This document shows, in pieces, positions 59,641-63,867 of a stretch of DNA of 64,000 bases (its first letter is position 1; the number at the start of each line of letters is the position of its first letter). The notes under the pieces were generated by a model. It was not told the DNA's origin. It saw nothing but the letters and a program-made list of their open reading frames with translations, and did not search any database. This stretch comes from Guillardia theta CCMP2712 (lineage: Eukaryota > Protista > Cryptophyta), in the NCBI RefSeq assembly GCF_000315625.1, contig NW_005434641.1, forward strand, positions 325,113-389,112, in the 5' to 3' direction. The position numbers and the translations under genes are program-made.

Positions 59641-60938
59641 TCTCCCTCTATCACGCAAATAACCCGTCATACATCGAATCCTCATACTCATCATCATCAT
59701 CTCCATCATCATCATCATCATCATCATCTCCATCATCATCTCCATCATCATCATCTCCATCATCATCATCTCCATCATCATCTCCATCATCATCTCCATC
59801 ATCATCACTNNNNNNNNNNNNNNNNNNNNNNNNNNNNNNNNNNNNNNNNNNNNNNNNNNNNNNNNNNNNNNNNNNNNNNNNNNNNNNNNNNNNNNNNNNN
59901 NNNNNNNNNNNNNNNNNNNNNNNNNNNNNNNNNNNNNNNNNNNNNNNNNNNNNNNNNNNNNNNNNNNNNNNNNNNNNNNNNNNNNNNNNNNNNNNNNNNN
60001 NNNNNNNNNNNNNNNNNNNNNNNNNNNNNNNNNNNNNNNNNNNNNNNNNNNNNNNNNNNNNNNNNNNNNNNNNNNNNNNNNNNNNNNNNNNNNNNNNNNN
60101 NNNNNNNNNNNNNNNNNNNNNNNNNNNNNNNNNNNNNNNNNNNNNNNNNNNNNNNNNNNNNNNNNNNNNNNNNNNNNNNNNNNNNNNNNNNNNNNNNNNN
60201 NNNNNNNNNNNNNNNNNNNNNNNNNNNNNNNNNNNNNNNNNNNNNNNNNNNNNNNNNNNNNNNNNNNNNNNNNNNNNNNNNNNNNNNNNNNNNNNNNNNN
60301 NNNNNNNNNNNNNNNNNNNNNNNNNNNNNNNNNNNNNNNNNNNNNNNNNNNNNNNNNNNNNNNNNNNNNNNNNNNNNNNNNNNNNNNNNNNNNNNNNNNN
60401 NNNNNNNNNNNNNNNNNNNNNNNNNNNNCTTCTCCTCCTCCTCCTCCTCCTCCTCCTCCTCCTCCTCCTCCTCCTCCTCCTCCTCCTCCTCCTCCTCCTC
60501 CTCCTCTTCCTCCTCTTCGCTTCACAACTGCTTCATGCTCATCATCCATCGGACGTCTTGGAGCAAGTCAAAACTACCCCCACCCCCCCATAACCCTCAC
60601 CTCCCACCCACCCCCACCGGTGCCTCAACTGCCGGGAGTCTCATCACAGTCACCGGCCCGGACCACAACCCCATCACCCACACCACCCCACCCATTGATC
60701 GACATCACCCTCTATTTTACCATGATCAGGAAGAACATTTGTAGGTAGGGGTACTAGAAAGTAGGGGTGAAGAGAAGGTGGGGTGCAATCGATGAGTAAA
60801 ATTTGATTTCTGAAGTCGCTTCTCCTTACGAAGGAGAGGAAGGACCAGGACCAGGACAAGGAGGAGAAGAAGGACAAGGAGGAGAAGAAGGAGAAGGAGG
60901 AGAAGGACAAGGACAAGGACAAGGTGCAGCTATTCAAC

Positions 60939-63867
60939 ATGCGTGAGCTTGTGTCGCTTGTAGCTCTGGTCTTGCTGCTCTCCGCAAGTCCCGACTGCTG
61001 CGATGCTCTCCGGGCCCTGAGGCTGAGAGGAGGTTCAGACGCTATGCTGGATGAGAGACTGAGCTCGATGAAGCTGTCGGAACTTCAGAAGGAGCTGCGA
61101 GCGAAGGGCCTTAGCACGAAAGGCCTCAAGGCTGAACTCATCAAGCGCCTCCAGGACTCCATGCACGAGCCTTCAAAGGATGTTGGAATAAAGAGAAACG
61201 CACCGGATGATCCCGGGGAGGGAAACATGCAGGAGGAAGACACTGAAGGAGAGCTCCCGATGAAGCAACCGCGAACTGACCGACCTTGCGTGCAGCATTC
61301 TGACGAGCATCAGTCTACAGGGACGGGAGAAGAGCCTTTGATCAAGGTGCGGCAGACCAACCAGGCAAAAATAGTGATCGAACGAGAGGGAGACGATGGT
61401 GTAGTGAAGGTGATCAACGGGTATGACTTGAAGGATCGATGTAGAGCCGCAGGCTTCAAGTTCGACGCGGCCGAGCGTGCTTGGGTCATCCCCATCTTCG
61501 CACTGCTGCATGGGATGGGGGTGTCGAGCTTGGATCAGATTGAGCACGACGACATCATGGACTACCTGCAGAGGATCGAGGTCACTGAAGCTCTGGCTTC
61601 GCAGCCGAAAGAACAAGAAGAGCTTGAGGCTGAGGTGGACGGGGACATGGTTTCTCTCAAGGGCAACACGTATGCTTGGAAAGACAAGATCCGGTCTGCA
61701 GGCTTCAGGTGGGACTCGACGCGCTCCTGCTGGCGAAGGCCTCTCGATCAAGTCCTGCTCTGGCTCAAAAGCGTGAGGACCGGGGGCGCTGACGAAGAGG
61801 GAGATGTAGAGGAACACGTCATTCGAGCAATCACTGAAATTAGCCAAGAGGAGCTCGCAAGAGCAAGCCCAGCACAAGTCGAGCAGCTTCAACCATACCT
61901 GAAAGTCGACAAGGAAGAGGTTGAGAGTTTTAATGGCTCGCCTCTTGTCCTCACAATCTCTTGCAGGTTCGCATCTACAACTCCTACAACCTCAAAGATC
62001 ACCTGCGGCAGCTGGGCTTTCGCTTCAACGTGCAGGAAAAGTGCTGGAGCTCGCGGCTAGAGGACGTCAAGCGGCTGCTGCCTGATGAAGACCTGACGTT
62101 GGACGCGATCATGGGCGTCATGCCGGATGACAAGCAGCTCGTGCCGCAGGCTCCCTTCCTGTCCATCAACGGCACCGACGTTGAAGTCCACAACTCCTAC
62201 TCCATGAAAGACTCGCTGCGCTCCATCGGGTTTCGATTCGATGCGGCGCGAGCTTGCTGGATCAGACCTGTAGAGGAAGTCCTGACCCTGCTCGAGCTGC
62301 CAGACTCCTCCAGCATCACCCTCGAGTTGCTCACGGAAACCAGCAAGAGAGCAGGTGCGACCCTCCTCTCCTCCTCTCCTCCTCCTCGCTCTCCTCCTCC
62401 TCTCCTCCTCCTCGCTCCTCCTGCTCCTCTCCTCCTCCTCGCTCTCCTCCTGCTCCTCTCTCTGCTCTTCTCTCATCCACTCATACAGTCGAAGGCGAGA
62501 TCGCGCAGGAGAAACTTGCTCCACATAAATCGGCAGCTCCCTCGCTCAAGGTGGAGGGCGACGAGCTCGCGGTGTACAACTGCTACGAGGTGAGAGGAGG
62601 AGGAAGGGGAGGAAGTTGCCTGACTTGACCGTCAGATCCGCGAGAAACTTCGAGCCGCTGGCTTCCGGTGGAACTCCGAAGGTGCCAAGTGGACGAGAAA
62701 CTTGCAGGATGCGATGTATGCCTTGGGTATTGACGGTACGATGAGAGCGGCGCGAGGGCAACAAACTGACGGAGAGGATCAGACGCATCTGATCTGACTG
62801 TGGAGAAACTCCTCTCCTTGGAAGCGACCGGAGAGGGTCGGGAGCAAGGGAAGGAGAAGGCTTCTCCCCACCTCTCTGTGGTCGACGGGGAGGTGCTCGT
62901 GTTCAACTCGTATGAGGTCTCCCGCGCTCCTCTGCTGCCTCCCAGTCAAGGTCTCCTGCAGGTGAAAGACAAGCTCCGCGCCATCGGCTTCCGCTGGGAC
63001 TCAAGTCGAGGCGTGTGGTCGAGGCCTACGGTGGACACGATGAGCTTGCTGGGGGTGACGGAGGAGGAAGCGATCTCCCTAGACAAGCTGCTCGCTGTCG
63101 ACCCGCTCAGTCAGCAGGCTGAGCAAGCGCAGCCGACGGTTGAGGTTGTGAACGAGGAAGTGCTGGTGCTCAACTCTTACTCGGCAAAAGAGGAGCTCAA
63201 GTCCCTTGAGTTCCACTTCGACAGGTAACCCCCAGCCATCATCGCCCGCCTCCTCTTCTTCCCCTCCGCTGCTTCGCATCCACATCCCGGTTGCTCCGCG
63301 AGCTCCGGGTTTCTGCTGCTGCTTCCTCTCTCCCCTTGCTGTAAACTTGTTGAGAGTTGACTCACGGGCAGTGAGCGGCGGGCGTGGGTGAAGAGCGTGG
63401 TGGAGGTGAAGCAGATGCTCGGGCTGGAGGACCAGATGGACATTGACATGAACAAGCTGCTCGCACACGCAGAAAAATTGCGAAGTCAGGCCAAGGAGGG
63501 CGAGCAGCTCGAGGAGGGAGAACATGCCCAGGAGCAGGAGCAGATGGAGGAGGGGGAGGGGGGTGGAGGGGCTAAGCCAGCGGATCGCTCTCCTTCACCT
63601 GACGTGGTCGATCACACGCCTGGTCCTCTTCCTCCTCTGCTGACAGACAGCTACTGACCCAACGCAGATCTGCTGTCGAGCATGGGGCAGAGCCTGCAAG
63701 GCTGGTCAAGTAAGTAGAGCCTCCCTCCCCATCCCTCCTCCCTCTTCTGTTCCTCCTGCCCTTCCCACCCCCTCTACCTCCTTGACCCCCTCCCTCCGTC
63801 CCTCCCATATGACAGAGATGGCAGAGACGTCAGAGAAGGCGTAGATGATGCATGGAGGGAGAGTTGA
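60939..63867 (+). CDS. Signal peptide + LRLRGG + SAP domain + seven tandem DUF5710/HARP-like repeats; putative organelle-targeted DNA-binding protein
   Basis: LSSMKLSELQKELRAKGLSTKGLKAELIKRLQ is a canonical SAP domain; seven copies of V.v.NsY..Kd.lR..GF.[FW]d.....W.r recovered across exons. 3' end approximate. Confidence 0.8.

Follow-up and report, generated by a model that had tools for sequence, protein, structure and literature searches.

A spliced cryptophyte gene joining a SAP domain to seven DUF5710-like repeats behind a leader that ends in LRGG

SAP-domain DNA anchors include SAF-A, Ku70, PIAS, and pTAC3, the last of these being a SAP-domain protein of plant plastid nucleoids. The protein described here is encoded in a 64,000-nucleotide stretch of the Guillardia theta genome (this whole stretch is called the window), and it likewise has a canonical helix-extended-helix SAP domain near its probable mature N-terminus. 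In contrast to the window protein, none of SAF-A, Ku70, PIAS, and pTAC3 is known to join the SAP domain to DUF5710-type repeats or to a periplastid-type leader, and the combination of SAP with DUF5710 repeats was not described in the literature searched.

DUF5710 is found elsewhere as an accessory domain of plasmid and phage primases (RepB, UL52), SprT-like proteases, helicases, and giant-virus proteins. It shares with the repeats of the window protein the core motif Y..K(D/E)..(K/R)..G(F/A).(W/F)D....(K/R).W, but the DUF5710 unit is 44 aa long, whereas the window repeat reaches about 70 aa owing to two extra C-terminal helices. The window protein is further set apart by being eukaryotic, by having no enzyme domain, by its fusion to SAP, and by its putative signal peptide and LRGG leader. 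Copy number differs as well: the window protein and its orthologs have seven or eight repeats, whereas most other proteins matched by our repeat profile have one to four matched stretches (9 of the best 149 have five or more). A third comparison is with the XPB damage-recognition domain (XPB-DRD, PF18458), the HARP domain of SMARCAL1, and the N-domain of T4 UvsW, all of which have a beta-hairpin/helix/beta-hairpin/helix arrangement in common with the window repeat. HARP, XPB-DRD, and UvsW-N have reportedly been united as one class of small domains that recognise DNA structure and lie N-terminally in SF2 translocases.

Nucleomorphs retain no more than a few hundred genes, and most of their replication, repair, and chromosome-organising proteins must be made by the host. 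To our knowledge, few such host-made nucleomorph chromosome proteins have been identified. The SAP-repeat gene is a concrete, well-expressed, and cryptophyte-conserved candidate for a host-made protein acting on nucleomorph DNA, a good candidate if an unproven one. It is also an ortholog-conserved case of an LRGG-ended leader, and, through a structural, though weak, link to the XPB-DRD/HARP readers of DNA structure, it opens a way to study DUF5710, a domain of unknown function that occurs widely on primases, helicases, and SprT proteases.

Gene structure, splicing, and expression

Joining open frames across GT..AG introns, with two 3' introns added from transcripts, yielded a nine-exon gene on the forward strand, with a CDS at 60939-63844 that encodes 759 aa. 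The exons and the conserved C-terminal motif are as follows:

60939-61919, 61967-62354, 62489-62589, 62636-62735, 62783-62916, 62962-63224, 63372-63622, 63668-63709, and 63825-63844, forward strand: exons 1 to 9, from GT..AG joins and transcripts
63586..63705, forward strand: C-terminal motif RSPSP...LLSSMGxSxQGW within an acidic tail, running across intron 7, conserved in orthologs

All introns are GT..AG and 45-147 nt long, and their removal leaves a single continuous reading frame from the ATG at 60939. Transcript contigs came from two public runs, X1 and X2, which are labelled as two different organisms. Gaps in these contigs match the first six introns, five of them as listed joints and intron 2 as a break between adjacent pieces. 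The same contigs revealed two 3' introns, 63623-63667 and 63710-63824, which set the stop codon at 63842-63844. A shorter model, with its end at the in-frame stop codon 63655-63657, was rejected, since both of these segments are spliced out in the transcripts. The C-terminal motif appears in the window gene only when the transcript-supported introns are used, and it also occurs in a Hemiselmis ortholog (P0152) and in two metagenomic orthologs (P0160 and P0168). Because the motif recurs in orthologs, the last two introns are independently validated.

A mean contig depth of 290 in X1 and 24 in X2 shows that the gene is expressed. Thirteen public runs contain half or more of the words sampled from it, and the holders span seven studies. 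The SAP-repeat gene is thus a real, expressed, and spliced nuclear gene. A preliminary description, made from the letters of the window, had placed it at 61050-63400; the gene is indeed located there, but its CDS is larger, starting at 60939 and, with the two 3' introns seen in the transcripts, reaching 63844.

The seven repeats and their kinship with DUF5710

Seven tandem repeats had been proposed in that description, and once six introns are removed all seven quoted cores do fall in one frame of the spliced protein, at aa 160, 243, 332, 403, 487, 565, and 639, with the splicing supported by transcripts. The cores of repeats 5, 6, and 7 exist only after splicing, and both the X1 and the X2 contigs carry those joints.

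61374..61592, forward strand: repeat 1, aa 146-218 (hmmsearch envelope, AlphaFold two-repeat model, weak Pfam DUF5710 match at aa 162-185)
61620..61868, forward strand: repeat 2, aa 228-310, helices 2 and 3 separated by a longer insert (hmmsearch, AlphaFold two-repeat model)
61890..62140, forward strand: repeat 3, aa 318-385, with intron 1 inside (hmmsearch, transcripts)
62150..62499, forward strand: repeat 4, aa 389-460, its last residues past intron 2 (AlphaFold model of 62150-62353)
62536..62844, forward strand: repeat 5, aa 473-544, with introns 3 and 4 inside (hmmsearch, transcripts)
62863..63129, forward strand: repeat 6, aa 551-624, with intron 5 inside (hmmsearch, transcripts)
63130..63495, forward strand: repeat 7, aa 625-697, with intron 6 inside, the most divergent (hmmsearch, transcripts)

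Each unit consists of two short strands, an N-x-Y turn, a helix (K-D/E-x-L-R/K), the segment G-F-R/K-W/F-D/N, a strand that ends in the one invariant Trp, and two last helices that include a conserved I-T-L-x-x-L-L. Intron 5 in repeat 6 and intron 3 in repeat 5 lie at the same codon position. Tandem Repeats Finder found no DNA-level tandem repeat of this period. Each repeat is closest to the repeat of the same ordinal number in other species, clearly so for repeats 1, 2, 3, 6, and the last, so the array is old and did not arise by recent amplification. The repeat is ancient and can be seen only in the protein sequence. Confident folding of the unit, hundreds of profile relatives, and the keeping of ordinal position across species together argue that the repeats are not a product of chance.

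To place the repeats among known families, we built a profile from the seven window repeats and two Hanusia repeats and searched it against 1.84 billion representative proteins. This retrieved 556 proteins at E<=1e-3, of which 57 reached E<=1e-10, the best matches being two seven-repeat SAP proteins (P0003 and P0004). Among the best 149 of the 556 matches, Pfam assigns DUF5710 to 55 (best E 1e-66), SprT-like to 15, SAP to 6, and RepB_primase to 3, and several carry helicase domains (ResIII, AAA_34, Helicase_C). When the domain segments were isolated, DUF5710 was the sole recurring family, matching 66 of 145, with the next family at 4. One relative, P0026, matches both the repeat profile (E 2.3e-15) and DUF5710 (50.1 bits). 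The window exons themselves score below the DUF5710 (PF18974) gathering cut-off of 26.5 bits, exon 1 alone giving 19.9 bits and exon 2 alone 15.8, and the full-length orthologs P0003 and P0004 exceed it, at 27.7 and 29.3 bits. On the strength of the profile retrieval, the ortholog scores, and the recurrence among segments, the repeats are best described as diverged, elongated DUF5710 domains.

The DUF5710 kinship suggested earlier was thus borne out by the profile search. The accompanying label "prokaryote-like" holds in part: DUF5710 relatives do occur in bacteria and phages, but also in giant viruses and eukaryotes, and the long form with the two extra helices was found only in eukaryotic-looking proteins (spliced or long contigs, SAP fusions). 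A PDB sequence search with the repeat profiles gave chance matches only (antibody frameworks, MciZ, calpain), and tblastn of two repeats returned no match in the phage collection. When a RepB-primase/DUF5710 protein was compared with plasmids by tblastn, only the primase part matched. HA-domain proteins (PF03457) among the profile matches cover profile positions 21-46 only and were taken as motif-level similarity. A "KDWK domain" lead proved to refer to SAND domains and is irrelevant here, and for the relative P0169, which JGI calls "thermostable 8-oxoguanine DNA glycosylase", Pfam gave that name no support at E <= 0.001, and it was left unused.

An AlphaFold2 model of repeat 4, from a 145-row alignment, has the order strand-strand-helix-strand-strand-helix-helix at a mean pLDDT of 90.9. 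A model of repeats 1 and 2 gives the same fold twice, joined by a linker with a pLDDT of about 50, with a pTM of 0.48 and no fixed packing between the units. Because the two-repeat model lacks rigid packing, the array resembles a string of beads, with no sign of a rigid solenoid.

The best structural neighbours of the repeat were weak but consistent in three libraries: the XPB damage-recognition domain, the T4 UvsW N-domain, and phage SNF2/HepA-like N-domains. In the ESM Atlas, the closest shapes were those of phage SNF2 helicase N-domains, at TM 0.59, followed at TM 0.55 by a cluster that bears the annotation XPB_DRD; the Atlas model for the Hemiselmis ortholog had these neighbours too. Weak matches in the BFVD viral library included phage SSL2-type helicases, a "HepA-related protein", a SMARCAL1-like phage protein, a giant-virus topoisomerase I, and three DUF5710 proteins. 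Foldseek against the PDB returned nothing below E 0.3. MotA-CTD, against which the preliminary description had proposed checking a single repeat, came out as a weak structural neighbour. The same description had likened the repeats to HARP-like modules; the fold neighbourhood agrees, as it includes XPB-DRD, UvsW-N, and HARP-like helicase N-domains, but among the scans HARP (PF07443) gave no sequence-profile match, and XPB_DRD matched 1 of the 145 segments, at E 0.06. Judged by these models, the repeats have a weak link to the DNA-structure readers of the XPB-DRD/HARP class.

Taken as a whole, the protein is acidic (pI 4.8, net charge -47), and each of its whole repeats carries a net charge of -2 to -7. 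In six of the seven repeats the beta-beta-alpha-beta-beta core, in which the conserved residues K20, R24, and R29 sit, is basic (+1 to +6); the core of repeat 7 is net -2. The acid charge is carried by the two added helices (helices 2 and 3) and by the linkers; repeat 2 is the most basic repeat and repeat 7 the most acidic. This acidic charge argues against a histone-like compaction protein, and it leaves room for protein binding rather than DNA binding by the repeats. A net negative charge on whole repeats is unusual for a general DNA binder.

The N-terminal leader, the SAP domain, and orthologs

Upstream of the repeats lie four features:

60939..61010, forward strand: signal-peptide-like N-terminus, aa 1-24 (hydropathy; cleavage from the -3/-1 rule)
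61011..61034, forward strand: short basic leader ending in LRLRGG, with LRGG at 61023-61034 (ortholog conservation)
61056..61157, forward strand: SAP domain, aa 40-73 (Pfam PF02037, E 1.1e-11)
61188..61283, forward strand: acidic linker with the basic patches IKRNAP (61188-61205) and MKQPRTDR (61260-61283) (sequence)

The 12-residue hydrophobic window LVSLVALVLLLS (aa 4-15) has a mean Kyte-Doolittle value of 2.97, from a hydropathy calculation rather than a trained predictor. The hydrophobic stretch is followed by S-P-D-C-C-D-A, with small residues at -3/-1, as in the orthologs, so that signal cleavage is likely after C-D-A and would give Leu-24 as the +1 residue. Only about 8 residues lie between the signal peptide and LRGG in the Guillardia protein, and the SAP domain starts seven residues past LRLRGG. 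The LRGG of the leader is identical to the C-terminus of ubiquitin. It is invariant in 13 of the 13 orthologs examined, 8-15 aa before SAP, and it follows a spacer of 17-50 arginine-, serine-, and alanine-rich residues without conservation. All orthologs with an intact N-terminus have a hydrophobic start, a variable spacer, and LRGG before SAP. A comparable leader was not found on any other frame of the window, and no mention of an LRGG leader was found in the literature searched.

By the accepted rule, a periplastid presequence differs from a stromal one in having no Phe or Phe-like residue at position +1 of its transit peptide (PMC12136025), and the high-confidence plastid class of ASAFind, in diatoms, needs F, Y, W, or L at this position (PMC12136025). 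At the likely +1 position, the window protein and its Hanusia counterpart have Leu; other orthologs have R, S, A, or P, and the ortholog P0158 may have Tyr. The +1 rule therefore leans to the periplastid compartment for the ortholog family and is ambiguous for the Guillardia protein, since Leu is plastid-permissive in ASAFind. An ER-type signal and a non-Phe +1 residue had both been anticipated for this protein. The hydropathy result agrees with the former, the hydrophobic N-terminus being conserved in full-length orthologs, and the likely Leu agrees with the latter, with the leader architecture kept in every full-length ortholog.

The SAP domain named in the preliminary description reaches 44.5 bits, above the 23.9 at which Pfam sets its gathering cut-off. 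The basic patches it named are also present, and ortholog linkers have KR-x-AP-E/D and a second K/R cluster at the equivalent place, making a bipartite nuclear-localisation signal possible.

Among named relatives, a Hanusia phi protein stands closest to exon 1 (66% identity), and an ORF on an ENA contig is 94% identical to exon 1. Further orthologs are found in Hemiselmis andersenii (UniRef A0A6U2EZG6, "SAP domain-containing protein") and Baffinella frigidus, and orthologs with seven or eight repeats come from Hanusia, Hemiselmis, Baffinella, and metagenomes. By this kinship the window is nuclear DNA of a cryptophyte. All the named taxa in which the gene family was seen are cryptophytes with plastids. 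The database relatives are unnamed or labelled "SAP domain-containing protein", and a word search with the full-length ortholog alignment returned only a member of the query.

A possible scaffold on nucleomorph DNA and its alternatives

The reading we favour, with a probability of roughly 45% for the full chain, is that of a DNA-anchored multivalent scaffold located in the periplastid compartment and nucleomorph. Under this reading, a protein encoded in the host nucleus would enter the ER through its signal peptide and carry the LRGG-ended leader. Delivery into the complex plastid would be its most probable route, with the periplastid compartment and nucleomorph a likelier destination than the stroma, and the leader may be cleaved at the LRGG site. 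SAP, at the mature N-terminus, would then anchor the protein to DNA, while seven independently folding DUF5710-like modules, each with an XPB-DRD/HARP-like beta-beta-alpha-beta-beta core plus two helices, would hang on flexible acidic linkers. The modules could give multivalent contacts with DNA structures, with replication and repair partner proteins, or with both. The data show the gene with its splicing and expression, the SAP domain, the repeat family with its fold, and the conserved leader; where the protein goes, that it is cut at LRGG, that its repeats bind DNA, and that it acts as a scaffold are steps that we infer. The basic cores in six of the seven repeats and the conservation of the leader count in favour of a periplastid DNA scaffold. 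Counting against it are the acidity of the protein, the short spacer, and the Leu at +1, as well as the lack of a HARP sequence match and the single XPB_DRD match.

Much of this evidence could be read in other ways. It is conceivable, if rather doubtful, that the protein works in the same compartment with SAP as its sole DNA anchor and repeats that bind proteins, the acidic array recruiting or holding basic partners such as histones, primase or PrimPol, helicases, or SprT-type proteases. The negative charge of the whole repeats, with acidic helices 2 and 3, speaks for such an arrangement, as does the adaptor-like occurrence of DUF5710 as an accessory on many different enzymes, and individual repeat identities are kept across species as if each repeat had its own partner. 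Nevertheless, K20, R24, and R29 are conserved in a basic core, and the nearest folds are DNA-recognition domains. We consider it quite improbable that the protein instead crosses all four membranes to organise or repair plastid DNA as a nucleoid protein of the stroma. The R, S, A, or P of the orthologs at the likely +1 tells against this, and NLS-like linker patches would be needless in the stroma, even though the likely Leu at +1 is among the residues accepted by ASAFind in diatoms (PMC12136025).

SAP proteins in plant plastid nucleoids, of which pTAC3 is one, do lend the stromal location some precedent. Least credible to us is a protein of the secretory pathway or nuclear-envelope lumen, or a secreted one, unrelated to endosymbiont DNA, its SAP and repeat similarity being structural reuse. 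Only the signal peptide is firmly recognisable, and the transit-peptide-like part is very short in the Guillardia protein, as such a fate would have it; but SAP and modules of DNA enzymes would be without an obvious substrate in the ER lumen, the Arg/Ser-rich ortholog spacers are of a length and composition typical of transit-peptide-like sequence, and the restriction of the family, among named taxa, to cryptophytes with plastids also points away from it.

A metagenomic protein bears on the favoured scaffold reading. P0006 (L001:3954-8711), of 1,585 aa, is encoded on a 10-kb metagenomic eukaryotic contig. It has a signal-peptide-like start and a leader whose last residues are IRGG. Its SAP match is weak, at 18.8 bits; its UL52-type primase domain, at 29.9 bits, clears the threshold; and its long-form repeats number about five. 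This PrimPol-type enzyme therefore has in common with the window protein the signal peptide, the xRGG leader end, the SAP-like segment, and long-form repeats, but it carries a UL52/AEP primase-polymerase domain with about five repeats, whereas the window protein is without a catalytic domain. The shared leader, SAP-like segment, and repeats suggest a common recruitment cassette, of which the window protein would be the non-catalytic scaffold version. In its most specific form, this idea makes the window protein a motorless array of seven or eight HARP/XPB-DRD-like readers on SAP that serves as a scaffold of the AT-rich nucleomorph chromosome or replication fork, with the cassette shared with a periplastid PrimPol and both proteins imported behind a ubiquitin-tail-mimic LRGG leader removed by a ubiquitin-type protease; in all these particulars together, we hold it to be unlikely. 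The comparison with P0006 itself indicates that the SAP-plus-repeat cassette is in use at least twice, in P0006 together with a catalytic domain and in the window protein on its own, and such use would fit a part in recruiting or tethering during DNA replication and repair.

Possible duplication behind repeats 5 and 6

The two introns that interrupt repeats 5 and 6 of the window gene lie at an identical codon position in both repeats, i.e., between N-x-Y-E and I/V-R/K. When the repeats of the window gene were compared with one another, the best internal match of repeat 5 was repeat 6. Because of the shared codon position and this best match, the sequences suggest that repeats 5 and 6 arose by a duplication that copied the intron along.

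Features of the window gene (+ strand) and its surroundings, in window coordinates
~59700-60400: run of N (assembly gap), just upstream of the gene
60840-60924: microsatellite of the AGGAGAAGG type, purine-rich, within the 5' UTR directly upstream of the ATG
61023-61034: LRGG, closing the leader
62362-62472: CT-rich microsatellite, inside intron 2
62590-62635: intron 3, interrupting repeat 5
62917-62961: intron 5, interrupting repeat 6
63586-63705: conserved C-terminal motif RSPSP...LLSSMGxSxQGW, within the acidic tail

Both microsatellites were passed over as repeats in the sequencing-read comparison. Due to the assembly gap, the promoter region of the window gene is incomplete.

Conserved ends of the protein

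The four residues that close the leader are the same as the last four of ubiquitin, and they are kept without exception in the N-termini of the orthologs (P0002, P0003, the Hemiselmis ortholog P0152, P0158-P0165, P0167, and P0010). The spacer preceding them varies freely between orthologs in both length and sequence. A literature search found no published mention of an LRGG-ended leader. At the other end, the C-terminal motif, with two Ser-Pro sites inside it, is common to the window gene, the Hemiselmis ortholog, and metagenomic orthologs.

Relatives with other domain combinations

The metagenomic eukaryotic protein P0006 (L001:3954-8711) has a signal peptide and a leader ending in IRGG. It also matches SAP weakly, contains a primase domain of the UL52/PrimPol type, and carries about five long-form repeats as in the window gene. 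P0006 thereby resembles a sister protein of the window gene's product that has kept a catalytic part. The metagenomic relatives P0166, P0169, and P0005 each carry 4-7 long-form repeats without a SAP domain. The JGI name of P0169, "thermostable 8-oxoguanine DNA glycosylase", has no Pfam support at E <= 0.001. P0015 has a CCHC zinc knuckle in addition to the repeats.

Multi-copy HA (helicase-associated, PF03457) proteins account for seven of the best 149 of the 556 matches to the repeat profile, and they align only to profile positions 21-46, i.e., the L..lGF.W part. The similarity between HA and DUF5710 may be a motif-level resemblance or may reflect a distant link between both domains.
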